The position numbers were made by a program, and so were the translations under genes. Below the pieces are notes generated by a model, which saw nothing but the letters and a program-made list of their open reading frames with translations, searched no databases and was not told the origin of the DNA. Positions 1-4,838 of a stretch of DNA of 5,254 nt are shown one piece after another. Numbering within the stretch: position 1 is the stretch's first letter; every line of letters starts with the position of its first letter. The stretch lies in assembly GCF_000143415.4 (NCBI RefSeq), contig NW_003314739.1, positions 1-5,254 on the forward strand, read 5' to 3'. The DNA is from Selaginella moellendorffii. Lineage: Eukaryota; Plantae; Lycopodiophyta.

Positions 1-784
1 AGCGAGTGGGCAACATCCATGGCTCGGTTTGCGGTGGGACTTGAACCGTTGGAAAGCTTGCGTGAGTCCACCCAGTTTCCACAGAAACGGATCCCGATTT
101 CGTTGCTCCACCGTCCCACACCATTGCAATGGGTTTTGTGCTGTTCCCGTTGCCATATCTCGTGGACCGTGGGCCCCCTTTCGCCCTTGGGCACATGGGA
201 GCAACTGGGGCGGTGCGCGCAACTGGCCCATGTGGCCAAGTACATTTTTCCATGTCCTGGGCGCCTGCTTTTGTGGTTTTTCCCACGGAAGAAGATGCGT
301 CCCACGTGGCGATCCGTGTGCCCGCCCGCACTCCGGCACCAACGGGGCCGGCCGGCGTGACGCCCCGGTCGCGGCCGTGCCAACGGATCGCGGGCCCCAT
401 GCGTGGGCTGCCGCCGGGAGTGCATCTCACTCTCGAGGAAAACACCGCACTGGCGCTCGGGCCTGCACTGGAACGCGACCCCAGGAGCGCCGTGGCGAAG
501 CCCGCGTCGAGGGCATCGATCCGAATTGGCTGGGCCCCCCATGCCATGCTGGCACCGTGCGTGCCTTGTCGAAAACGGCACACCCTTGCGACCGCTGGGC
601 GAAAGGGGCAAACCCCGAGAGGTCCTTGCACCTCCTGTCACTGGGGAGGGTGCCCCCCACGAACACGAACCCAACGGCGCCAGTCCCACGCGAAACGCAC
701 GCACGGTTCGCGAGAAAACGGCCCCCAACGCCCGCATTCTCCATTATTCCGAGAGAATATTCCCTCCACTACTTAAATTGTGCC

Positions 785-789
785 AAAAA
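785..789 (-). terminator. Pol III oligo(dT) terminator TTTTT (also 2034-2038, 3283-3287, 4532-4536)
   Basis: The first run of 4 or more T downstream of the B box on the minus strand; it abuts the 3' strand of the terminal stem. Confidence 0.7.
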
Positions 790-805
790 GAGGTGGCTCC
801 GGGTG

Positions 806-816
806 GGTCTCGACCC
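806..816 (-). promoter_or_regulatory. Pol III internal B box, non-canonical (also 2055-2065, 3304-3314, 4553-4563)
   Basis: GGGTCGAGACC; the core GGTCGAGAC differs from GWTCRANNC at one position (G for W). It lies 44 nt downstream of the A box, a normal type-2 spacing. Confidence 0.68.
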
Positions 817-860
817 AGGGACCTATTTGAGTGGACTTGTTTTTAGATTGGGGGTCTCTG

Positions 861-871
861 CCACTAGGCCT
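861..871 (-). promoter_or_regulatory. Pol III internal A box (also 2110-2120, 3359-3369, 4608-4618)
   Basis: AGGCCTAGTGG against consensus TRGCNNARYGG: only the first base mismatches. It starts about +12 from the inferred 5' end. Confidence 0.72.
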
Positions 872-903
872 CTACCACCTCTCCGTTACATATTTCGTGT
901 CGG

Positions 904-914
904 TTAAATTTATT
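904..914 (-). promoter_or_regulatory. TATA-like element AATAAATTTAA (also 2153-2163, 3402-3412, 4651-4661)
   Basis: An 11-nt A/T-only run in an otherwise GC-rich unit, at -32..-22 from the inferred start, where TBP/TFIIIB binds on Pol III genes. Confidence 0.6.
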
Positions 915-1025
915 GGGTTTGTGGGGGAGGGGGTTTAACTAGCAAAGGGCGATTATGGGGAGCGCTTAGTGCGATTAAGTGGGGCTTAAGTTGGGGCAAT
1001 CGCGGCCGTCGGTGCGGTGGGGTGG

Positions 1026-1055
1026 TTGACCGGCGGCGATGAGTTTGACCGGCGG
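1026..1055. repeat. 11-bp direct repeat TTGACCGGCGG x2 (1026-1036, 1045-1055), present in every unit
   Basis: Two exact copies with starts 19 bp apart. Confidence 0.85.
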
Positions 1056-1091
1056 TCCCCGTGACACGTGGCTAGGGCTAGGGTCTGGATA

Positions 1092-1390
1092 TGGGTTTTG
1101 CGCGAGTGGGCAAGATCCATGGCTCGGTTTGCGGTGGGACTTGAACCGTTGGAAAGCTTGCGTGAGTCCACCCGTTTCCACAGAAACGGATCTGGATTTC
1201 GTCGCTCCACCGGCCCGCACCATTGCGATGGGTTTGACGCTGGGTTTTCGAGCGAGTGGGCAACATCCATGGCTCGGTTTGCGGTGGGACTTGAACCGTT
1301 GGAAAGCTTGCGTGAGTCCACCCGTTTCCACAGAAACGGATCCCGATTTCGTTGCTCCACCGTCCCACACCATTGCAATGGGTTTTGTGC
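1092..1390. repeat. Internal direct duplication: sub-repeat A (1092-1240) and sub-repeat B (1241-1390), ~150 bp
   Basis: 1102-1240 and 1252-1390 align without gaps with 10 mismatches in 139 bp; 1115-1192 and 1265-1342 are identical. The window starts inside a B copy (1-141). Confidence 0.97.
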
Positions 1391-2033
1391 TGTTCCCGTT
1401 GCCATATCTCGTGGACCGTGGGCCCCCTTTCGCCCTTGGGCACATGGGAGCAACTGGGGCGGTGCGCGCAACTGGCCCATGTGGCCAAGTACATTTTTCC
1501 ATGTCCTGGGCGCCTGCTTTTGTGGTTTTTCCCACGGAAGAAGATGCGTCCCACGTGGCGATCCGTGTGCCCGCCCGCACTCCGGCACCAACGGGGCCGG
1601 CCGGCGTGACGCCCCGGTCGCGGCCGTGCCAACGGATCGCGGGCCCCATGCGTGGGCTGCCGCCGGGAGTGCATCTCACTCTCGAGGAAAACACCGCACT
1701 GGCGCTCGGGCCTGCACTGGAACGCGACCCCAGGAGCGCCGTGGCGAAGCCCGCGTCGAGGGCATCGATCCGAATTGGCTGGGCCCCCCATGCCATGCTG
1801 GCACCGTGCGTGCCTTGTCGAAAACGGCACACCCTTGCGACCGCTGGGCGAAAGGGGCAAACCCCGAGAGGTCCTTGCACCTCCTGTCACTGGGGAGGGT
1901 GCCCCCCACGAACACGAACCCAACGGCGCCAGTCCCACGCGAAACGCACGCACGGTTCGCGAGAAAACGGCCCCCAACGCCCGCATTCTCCATTATTCCG
2001 AGAGAATATTCCCTCCACTACTTAAATTGTGCC

Positions 2034-2131
2034 AAAAAGAGGTGGCTCCGGGTGGGTCTCGACCCAGGGACCTATTTGAGTGGACTTGTTTTTAGATTGG
2101 GGGTCTCTGCCACTAGGCCTCTACCACCTCT
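2034..2131 (-). ncRNA. Candidate Pol III small RNA, vault-RNA-like; copy 2
   Basis: Identical to 785-882, offset 1249. Confidence 0.72.
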
Positions 2132-2340
2132 CCGTTACATATTTCGTGTCGGTTAAATTTATTGGGTTTGTGGGGGAGGGGGTTTAACTAGCAAAGGGCG
2201 ATTATGGGGAGCGCTTAGTGCGATTAAGTGGGGCTTAAGTTGGGGCAATCGCGGCCGTCGGTGCGGTGGGGTGGTTGACCGGCGGCGATGAGTTTGACCG
2301 GCGGTCCCCGTGACACGTGGCTAGGGCTAGGGTCTGGATA

Positions 2341-3282: not shown

Positions 3283-3380
3283 AAAAAGAGGTGGCTCCGG
3301 GTGGGTCTCGACCCAGGGACCTATTTGAGTGGACTTGTTTTTAGATTGGGGGTCTCTGCCACTAGGCCTCTACCACCTCT
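3283..3380 (-). ncRNA. Candidate Pol III small RNA, vault-RNA-like; copy 3
   Basis: Identical to 785-882, offset 2498. Confidence 0.72.
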
Positions 3381-3589
3381 CCGTTACATATTTCGTGTCG
3401 GTTAAATTTATTGGGTTTGTGGGGGAGGGGGTTTAACTAGCAAAGGGCGATTATGGGGAGCGCTTAGTGCGATTAAGTGGGGCTTAAGTTGGGGCAATCG
3501 CGGCCGTCGGTGCGGTGGGGTGGTTGACCGGCGGCGATGAGTTTGACCGGCGGTCCCCGTGACACGTGGCTAGGGCTAGGGTCTGGATA

Positions 3590-4531: not shown

Positions 4532-4629
4532 AAAAAGAGGTGGCTCCGGGTGGGTCTCGACCCAGGGACCTATTTGAGTGGACTTGTTTTTAGATTGGGG
4601 GTCTCTGCCACTAGGCCTCTACCACCTCT
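4532..4629 (-). ncRNA. Candidate Pol III small RNA, vault-RNA-like; copy 4
   Basis: Identical to 785-882, offset 3747. Confidence 0.72.
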
Positions 4630-4838
4630 CCGTTACATATTTCGTGTCGGTTAAATTTATTGGGTTTGTGGGGGAGGGGGTTTAACTAGCAAAGGGCGAT
4701 TATGGGGAGCGCTTAGTGCGATTAAGTGGGGCTTAAGTTGGGGCAATCGCGGCCGTCGGTGCGGTGGGGTGGTTGACCGGCGGCGATGAGTTTGACCGGC
4801 GGTCCCCGTGACACGTGGCTAGGGCTAGGGTCTGGATA

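Follow-up and report, generated by a model that had tools for sequence, protein, structure and literature searches.

The window analysed here, a stretch of 5254 bases from Selaginella moellendorffii (contig NW_003314739.1), is made of 4.2 head-to-tail copies of a 1249-bp repeat. When the whole window is compared with itself at a shift of 1249 positions, the ungapped identity is 97.6%, and only five sites (305, 580, 621, 625 and 1131) vary among the four full units that can be aligned. A full repeat unit, to which no strand is assigned, can be delimited at 151..1399 from the period, the five variable sites and the contig joints; head-to-tail joints are likewise present in contigs from three public runs. 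One run, X20, had been guessed to be RNA, and was read as DNA because its depth is flat and because it yields tandem joints and contigs as the DNA runs do. The 1249-bp array is young and highly uniform.

GC content is 61% over the window; it rises to 65-79% in the unit's body and is ~47-53% around the cassette described below. In the GC-rich body (151-740), the observed/expected ratio of CpG is 0.99, so a long-term loss of methylated CpG is not apparent in this segment, in spite of its likely repeat status. Long open reading frames are found in several frames on both strands; they were rejected as coding sequences, as such frames are expected at 61-79% GC. Exact look-ups of ORF products from the unit gave no match, nor did a protein search with the longest ORF that spans the cassette, and pattern scans of metagenomes for relatives were also negative.

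Several minor features recur in the unit. The heptamer GTCCCAC is found five times per unit and 21 times in the window, where 1.5 occurrences are expected; sites that recur in each unit lie at 113, 299 and 683 on the plus strand and at 34, 1134 and 1284 on the minus strand. We take GTCCCAC to be the core of the upstream element of plant snRNA genes (RTCCCACATCG). A role as an element of this kind was discarded, as the spacing to TATA-like runs is unsuitable. On the plus strand, a hairpin at 186-249 has 14-nt arms (186-199 and 227-240) that are 93% complementary, with a T5 at 245-249 and a fold z-score of -1.5; it could be a second, small terminator hairpin of Pol III type, or the product of chance. 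Two occurrences of the motif TTGACCGGCGG (1025-1035 and 1045-1055) are offset by 20 nt, and (CTAGGG)2 lies at 1072-1083.

The main feature of the unit is a cassette on the minus strand, made of an AT run, a predicted transcribed part of ~97 nt (882..786 in the first copy) and a terminator. As read from the sequence and its exact copies, the first cassette occupies 785..914. Identical copies at 2034..2163, 3283..3412 and 4532..4661 were recovered both by exact match and with a covariance model of the cassette, which finds exactly one match per unit.

If position 882 is taken as +1, the cassette begins with AATAAATTTAA, a TATA-like AT run of 11 nt at 914..904 (-32..-22); no other A/T-only run in the 1249-bp unit is as long. 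It is followed at 871..861 by an A-box-like site, AGGCCTAGTGG, which starts at +12 and has one mismatch to TRGCNNAGTGG. Further downstream, GGGTCGAGACC (816..806) is a B-box-like site that departs from GGTTCRANNCC at one position; in tRNA numbering, G53, T55, C56, A58 and C61 are retained and T54 alone is changed. The ends of the putative RNA are predicted to pair with each other: AGAGGTGG (882..875) and CCACCTCT (796..789) form 8 bp, and a U-G pair between 874 and 797 raises the stem to nine pairs, so that its 5' arm is AGAGGTGG plus T (874..882) and its 3' arm is G plus CCACCTCT (789..797). A T5 at 789..785, with no other on that strand within the unit, would serve as terminator. The first-pass annotation of this DNA had proposed these five minus-strand signals in this order, and each of them was found at its proposed position in every unit. 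Two details were adjusted. The B box had been placed 44 nt beyond the A box, a figure that is right for the gap between the boxes, the distance from start to start being 55 nt. The T run had been placed directly after an 8-bp stem; it does lie at the end of the stem, but its first T is engaged in the last stem pair, and the arrangement can thus be described either as 7 bp followed by T5 or as 8 bp followed by T4.

This layout agrees with that of type-2, TFIIIC-dependent Pol III genes. In such genes the A box lies ~10-20 nt past the start, as AGGCCTAGTGG does, although matches to the A box are by themselves at chance level. The B box (GGTTCGANNCC) is found 30-60 nt past the A box, a range that includes the 44-nt gap before GGGTCGAGACC. 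The terminator of a type-2 gene is a run of at least 4-5 T, with no such run inside the gene; on its minus strand the cassette has no internal T4. On the plus strand, an internal T5 is present at 840-844, as had been reported; a full-length Pol III product is therefore possible from the minus strand only. Boxes, spacing, AT run and T5 all support the earlier assignment to the type-2 layout. Fold prediction and a comparison by eye with the T arm (CTGGG/CCCGG) of the retroelement Helenus-1_SMo delimit a 3' hairpin at 799..818 (minus strand), with CTGGGT and ACCCGG as arms and a loop of 8 nt; it contains the B box and can be interpreted as what was once a T arm, its loop now larger.

Short motifs may co-occur by chance within a repeat, and this explanation has some support in the fact that the A-box-like match alone is unremarkable (4 observed in the window versus 2.5 expected) and that the fold, considered below, is nothing unusual. 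We consider it nonetheless extremely improbable. B-box-like matches number 17 in the window versus 4.2 expected, and none of 200 shuffled sequences had as many. A rough estimate of the expectation of the whole composite by chance, obtained as the product of the empirical motif rates, the 8-bp stem and the T run, is ~0.05 per genome (2 x 2.1e8 positions); tolerances on position were generous, and the AT run was excluded from the calculation. Moreover, the AT run is longer than any other in the unit and the T5 is unique on the minus strand, and both are placed exactly as a Pol III gene requires. B-box enrichment, joint expectation and the placement of AT run and T5 together make it very unlikely that the composite arose by chance. 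We thus take it as real, in the sense that it would descend from a gene of Pol III type or would still be one, and we regard the cassette as a well-formed candidate gene.

B-box-like sites are not restricted to the cassette. Each unit has four, all on the minus strand (806-816, 512-522, 1137-1147 and 1287-1297), and the plus strand has none. Two of the four sit in a duplicated sub-repeat, so that three can be counted as independent; in simulated units, at least three sites on one strand occur with P = 0.026. One can conceive of an array in which sites of TFIIIC type stand without complete genes. The sub-repeats themselves, found in every unit, are two 150-bp segments (1093-1242 and 1243-1392) that are 91% alike, and their 13 differences all fall outside an identical core of 78 nt (1115-1192 and 1265-1342). 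The core carries a perfect consensus B box on the minus strand, GGTTCAAGTCC (1147..1137), and a perfect 7-bp hairpin, CCGTTTC-CACA-GAAACGG (1172-1189); its overall fold is unremarkable. The idea that the sub-repeats are decayed copies of the cassette was rejected: local alignment performs no better than with shuffled sequences (p 0.4-0.6), and the covariance model finds the cassette alone. A piece of the sub-repeat core is present elsewhere in the genome, as indicated by a 661-nt, low-depth contig from run X2 that matches 1149-1199 only (51 bases, with 3 differences) and has AT-rich, unrelated sequence on both sides. A 28-mer from inside 1149-1199 found no match in the metagenome collection.

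Comparison with known RNA families gave negative results. The Rfam search proposed in the first-pass annotation was run and returned no family match on the cassette strand. With Rfam 15, the whole window yielded no match at E<=1. When the search was relaxed to E<=10 for 770-900, no tRNA, tRNA-Sec, vault, Y RNA, 5S, 7SL or snRNA match was obtained, and the only entries were noise, namely plus-strand matches to a trypanosomatid snoRNA (16 bits) and to mir-1281 (14.5 bits); at the same threshold, 1080-1520 gave noise alone. ARAGORN detected no tRNA gene on the cassette strand with default or permissive settings. Calls made at its 80% score setting were dismissed as implausible, as they involve huge introns; one of them is a plus-strand call within the cassette, on a strand that is interrupted by the internal T5. 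An identity as Y RNA, a family recognised by its model and by the Ro-binding stem, was also discarded, as the cassette has no Rfam match.

The cassette is not a plant nuclear tRNA gene either. A cloverleaf is absent, and the sequence allows neither a D stem nor an anticodon stem: where the 5' side of the D stem would have GCTC, GAGG plus CCT are found instead, and the position of the anticodon arm is occupied by 31 nt without a stem, compared with an arm of 17 nt in tRNA. The hairpin at the position of the T arm has a loop of 8-10 nt, and one extra base precedes the acceptor-like stem. Because its RNA could not adopt a cloverleaf fold, the cassette does not encode a working tRNA.

The two ends of the cassette are nevertheless tRNA-like. 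On the 5' side the sequence reads GGTAG..AGTGG.AGAG.AC, and on the 3' side AGGTC, CTGGG, a loop bearing TCGA, CCCGG and an acceptor-like strand follow each other. The motif AGGTC and the CTGGG...CCCGG T stem, with its T-G wobble, recur in the tRNA-like LTR of Helenus-1_SMo, a miniature LTR retrotransposon from S. moellendorffii (PMC10886601), as judged by eye on these short motifs. The outer thirds thus look like decayed segments of a tRNA, the D arm on one side and the variable loop and T arm on the other, and the cassette probably descends from a tRNA. In view of these ends, descent from a tRNA is a better reading than a wholly new kind of gene. As neither Rfam at E<=10 nor ARAGORN reports a tRNA, the resemblance behind this proposal is one of motifs only. 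The earlier statement that the gene matches no recognised tRNA, 5S, snRNA, 7SL or Y RNA sequence is upheld by the Rfam and ARAGORN results, but the term “unassigned” has to be qualified because of the tRNA-like ends.

A tRNA-derived segment is also known from a different context in the same species. In the 120-bp LTR of Helenus-1_SMo, a tRNA-like part that contains A and B boxes precedes a T run (PMC10886601). One may consider that a miniature LTR retrotransposon of Helenus type (“TRIMp3”), arrayed in tandem, makes up the 1249-bp repeat, and that the cassette represents a tRNA-derived Pol III promoter located in the LTR of this element. The length of the repeat is compatible with this idea, as Helenus elements measure 311-1263 bp, and tandem arrays are formed by Cassandra and LTR-11_DR; furthermore, the cassette is flanked by TG (890) and CA (781 or 779). 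The remaining hallmarks of an LTR retrotransposon are missing. The unit holds a single cassette, with no second, diverged copy detected by the covariance model, and paired LTRs are absent. The CA end is followed by ATTTAAGTAGTG and not by a TGG... primer-binding site, and the upstream strand in the sense direction is C-rich and contains no polypurine tract. Elements of this class are flanked by target duplications of 4-6 bp, but the 5 nt on the two sides of the cassette disagree (AAATA versus ATTTA or CAATT). Beyond generic tRNA motifs, the cassette differs from Helenus-1_SMo as judged by eye: it retains neither the D stem nor the anticodon arm, and its T loop is larger. We therefore view an origin of this kind as very unlikely.

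If the cassette is a Pol III unit, its RNA can be examined for signs of a conserved structure. The 93-nt core has a predicted folding energy of -29.3 kcal/mol, compared with -24.7 +/- 3.5 in shuffled sequences (z = -1.3), and 20 of 200 shuffles were as stable, so that its stability is not significant; with the flanks included, the z-score is -1.35. The minimum-energy and centroid structures agree only in the panhandle and in the 6-bp hairpin on the 3' side. As all four copies are identical, the window provides no signal of conservation or covariation, and since the units differ at just five sites over 4 x 1249 bp, the fact that each copy is intact is uninformative on selection. The proposal of the first-pass annotation that the repeat contains a real gene for an RNA of ~95-100 nt, and not inert satellite, receives no help from the fold, from the identical copies or from the searches, which found no relatives.

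Transcript data have a limited bearing on this question. In RNA-seq run X24, which bears the label of this species, none of 9.2 million reads mapped on 151-1249. The library is a paired-end cDNA library, unsuited to an RNA of 97 nt, and the organism in the run is unconfirmed; at most, the result makes it less likely that long transcripts spanning the array are abundant.

Two opposite interpretations have to be weighed at this point. One is that the cassette is a dead relic, either a decayed tRNA pseudogene or a SINE-like head, that was amplified together with the ancestral unit and neither binds TFIIIC nor is transcribed. The intact look of its signals would then reflect merely the youth and uniformity of an array in which differing sites are so few. 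Loss of the cloverleaf, lack of a family match, the ordinary stability of the fold, one mismatch in each box and the absence of an upstream CAA would all be natural in a relic, and the lack of reads in X24, with the reservation made about that cDNA library, points in the same direction. On the other hand, decay would have had to spare, by luck, a perfect 8-bp stem, the key residues of the B box, the longest AT run at -30 and the only T5, and the survival of these elements contrasts with the loss of the D stem and the anticodon arm. We regard a dead relic as a real possibility, albeit on the unlikely side.

At the other extreme, the cassette might encode a working, lycophyte-specific Pol III RNA of ~97 nt, a tRNA-descended component of a ribonucleoprotein in the style of vault or Y RNA, arrayed like 5S rDNA. 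Style refers here to an architecture in which a panhandle encloses a variable centre and the 3' end is a U tail. Such a function would be in line with the retention of promoter, ends and terminator while the inner, tRNA-specific part changed, and also with the multicopy tandem arrangement. The likeness to vault RNA lies at this level: vault RNAs are also ~100 nt long, have internal A and B boxes, a panhandle of paired ends and a variable centre, and end at a T run. The likeness is, however, architectural only: the Rfam Vault family gave no match in the window at E<=1 or in 770-900 at E<=10, and the same holds for Y RNA and for any other family. The major vault protein is not known from land plants, and a literature search found nothing that links it with Selaginella. 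Besides, structure beyond the terminal stem gives no signal, the identical copies leave no room for covariation, and X24 contains no reads, again in a library ill suited to so short an RNA. We give a functional RNA of this type a low probability.

Between these extremes, a parallel is offered by tRNA genes of other plants. The signals used by plant tRNA genes are the A and B boxes, a poly-T tract and, upstream, a region that is AT-rich or TATA-like; transcription is aided by a CAA triplet located no more than ~20 nt from the start (PMC7544208, PMC13578239). In the cassette, no CAA is found in -20..-1, and the AT run at -32..-22 is present. In Arabidopsis, the tandem clusters of Ser-Tyr-Tyr, Pro and Cys tRNA genes retain their cis signals and yet are repressed, and the clustered Ser genes lack the CAA motif (PMC7544208). 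The array, with its putative type-2 unit, resembles these clusters, in which head-to-tail units of ~0.4-1.5 kb each carry type-2 Pol III genes that are transcribable but mostly silenced (PMC7544208, PMC12308677), and the cassette shares with them the A and B boxes, the AT-rich upstream region and the poly-T, as well as the lack of CAA that is seen in the clustered Ser genes. Unlike the Arabidopsis genes, the cassette has neither a cloverleaf nor an anticodon arm and is present once per unit, and silencing would be a property deduced for the array from the parallel itself.

The interpretation that we favour, with a probability of about 0.5, is that the cassette is a type-2 (TFIIIC-dependent) Pol III unit, descended from a tRNA and still transcribable, that is carried passively by the array and is probably silenced for the most part. 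TFIIIC would bind the A-box-like and B-box-like sites and would position TFIIIB on the AT run, ~27 bp upstream. Pol III would then initiate near 882 and terminate in the T run at 789..785. The predicted product would be an RNA of ~96-97 nt in which the paired ends form a panhandle of 8-9 bp and the former T arm persists as a 6-bp hairpin; the centre of the molecule would be an A-rich open loop, and the 3' end would be a short U tail, of the type that is bound by the La protein. Like the clustered Arabidopsis tRNA genes, the array would likely be kept silent most of the time.

Multicopy arrays of RNA genes are, in addition, known targets of site-specific LINEs: rDNA is colonised by R2, and 5S, U2 and tRNA genes are also occupied by elements of this class (PMC4640811, PMC3706591). 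The 1249-bp array is comparable to such loci in being tandem and uniform and in carrying a small unit that, judging from sequence alone, is of Pol III type. Unlike the colonised arrays, the units of this window carry no insertion.

The significance of the cassette differs according to whether its RNA is made. If it is, S. moellendorffii would possess a plant Pol III non-coding RNA that lies outside every described family and is produced from a tandem multicopy array; such an RNA would illustrate how a tRNA gene can be turned into something else with only its promoter, its ends and its terminator kept. If, on the contrary, the array is silent, it would represent in a lycophyte what the silenced clusters of tRNA genes are in Arabidopsis.
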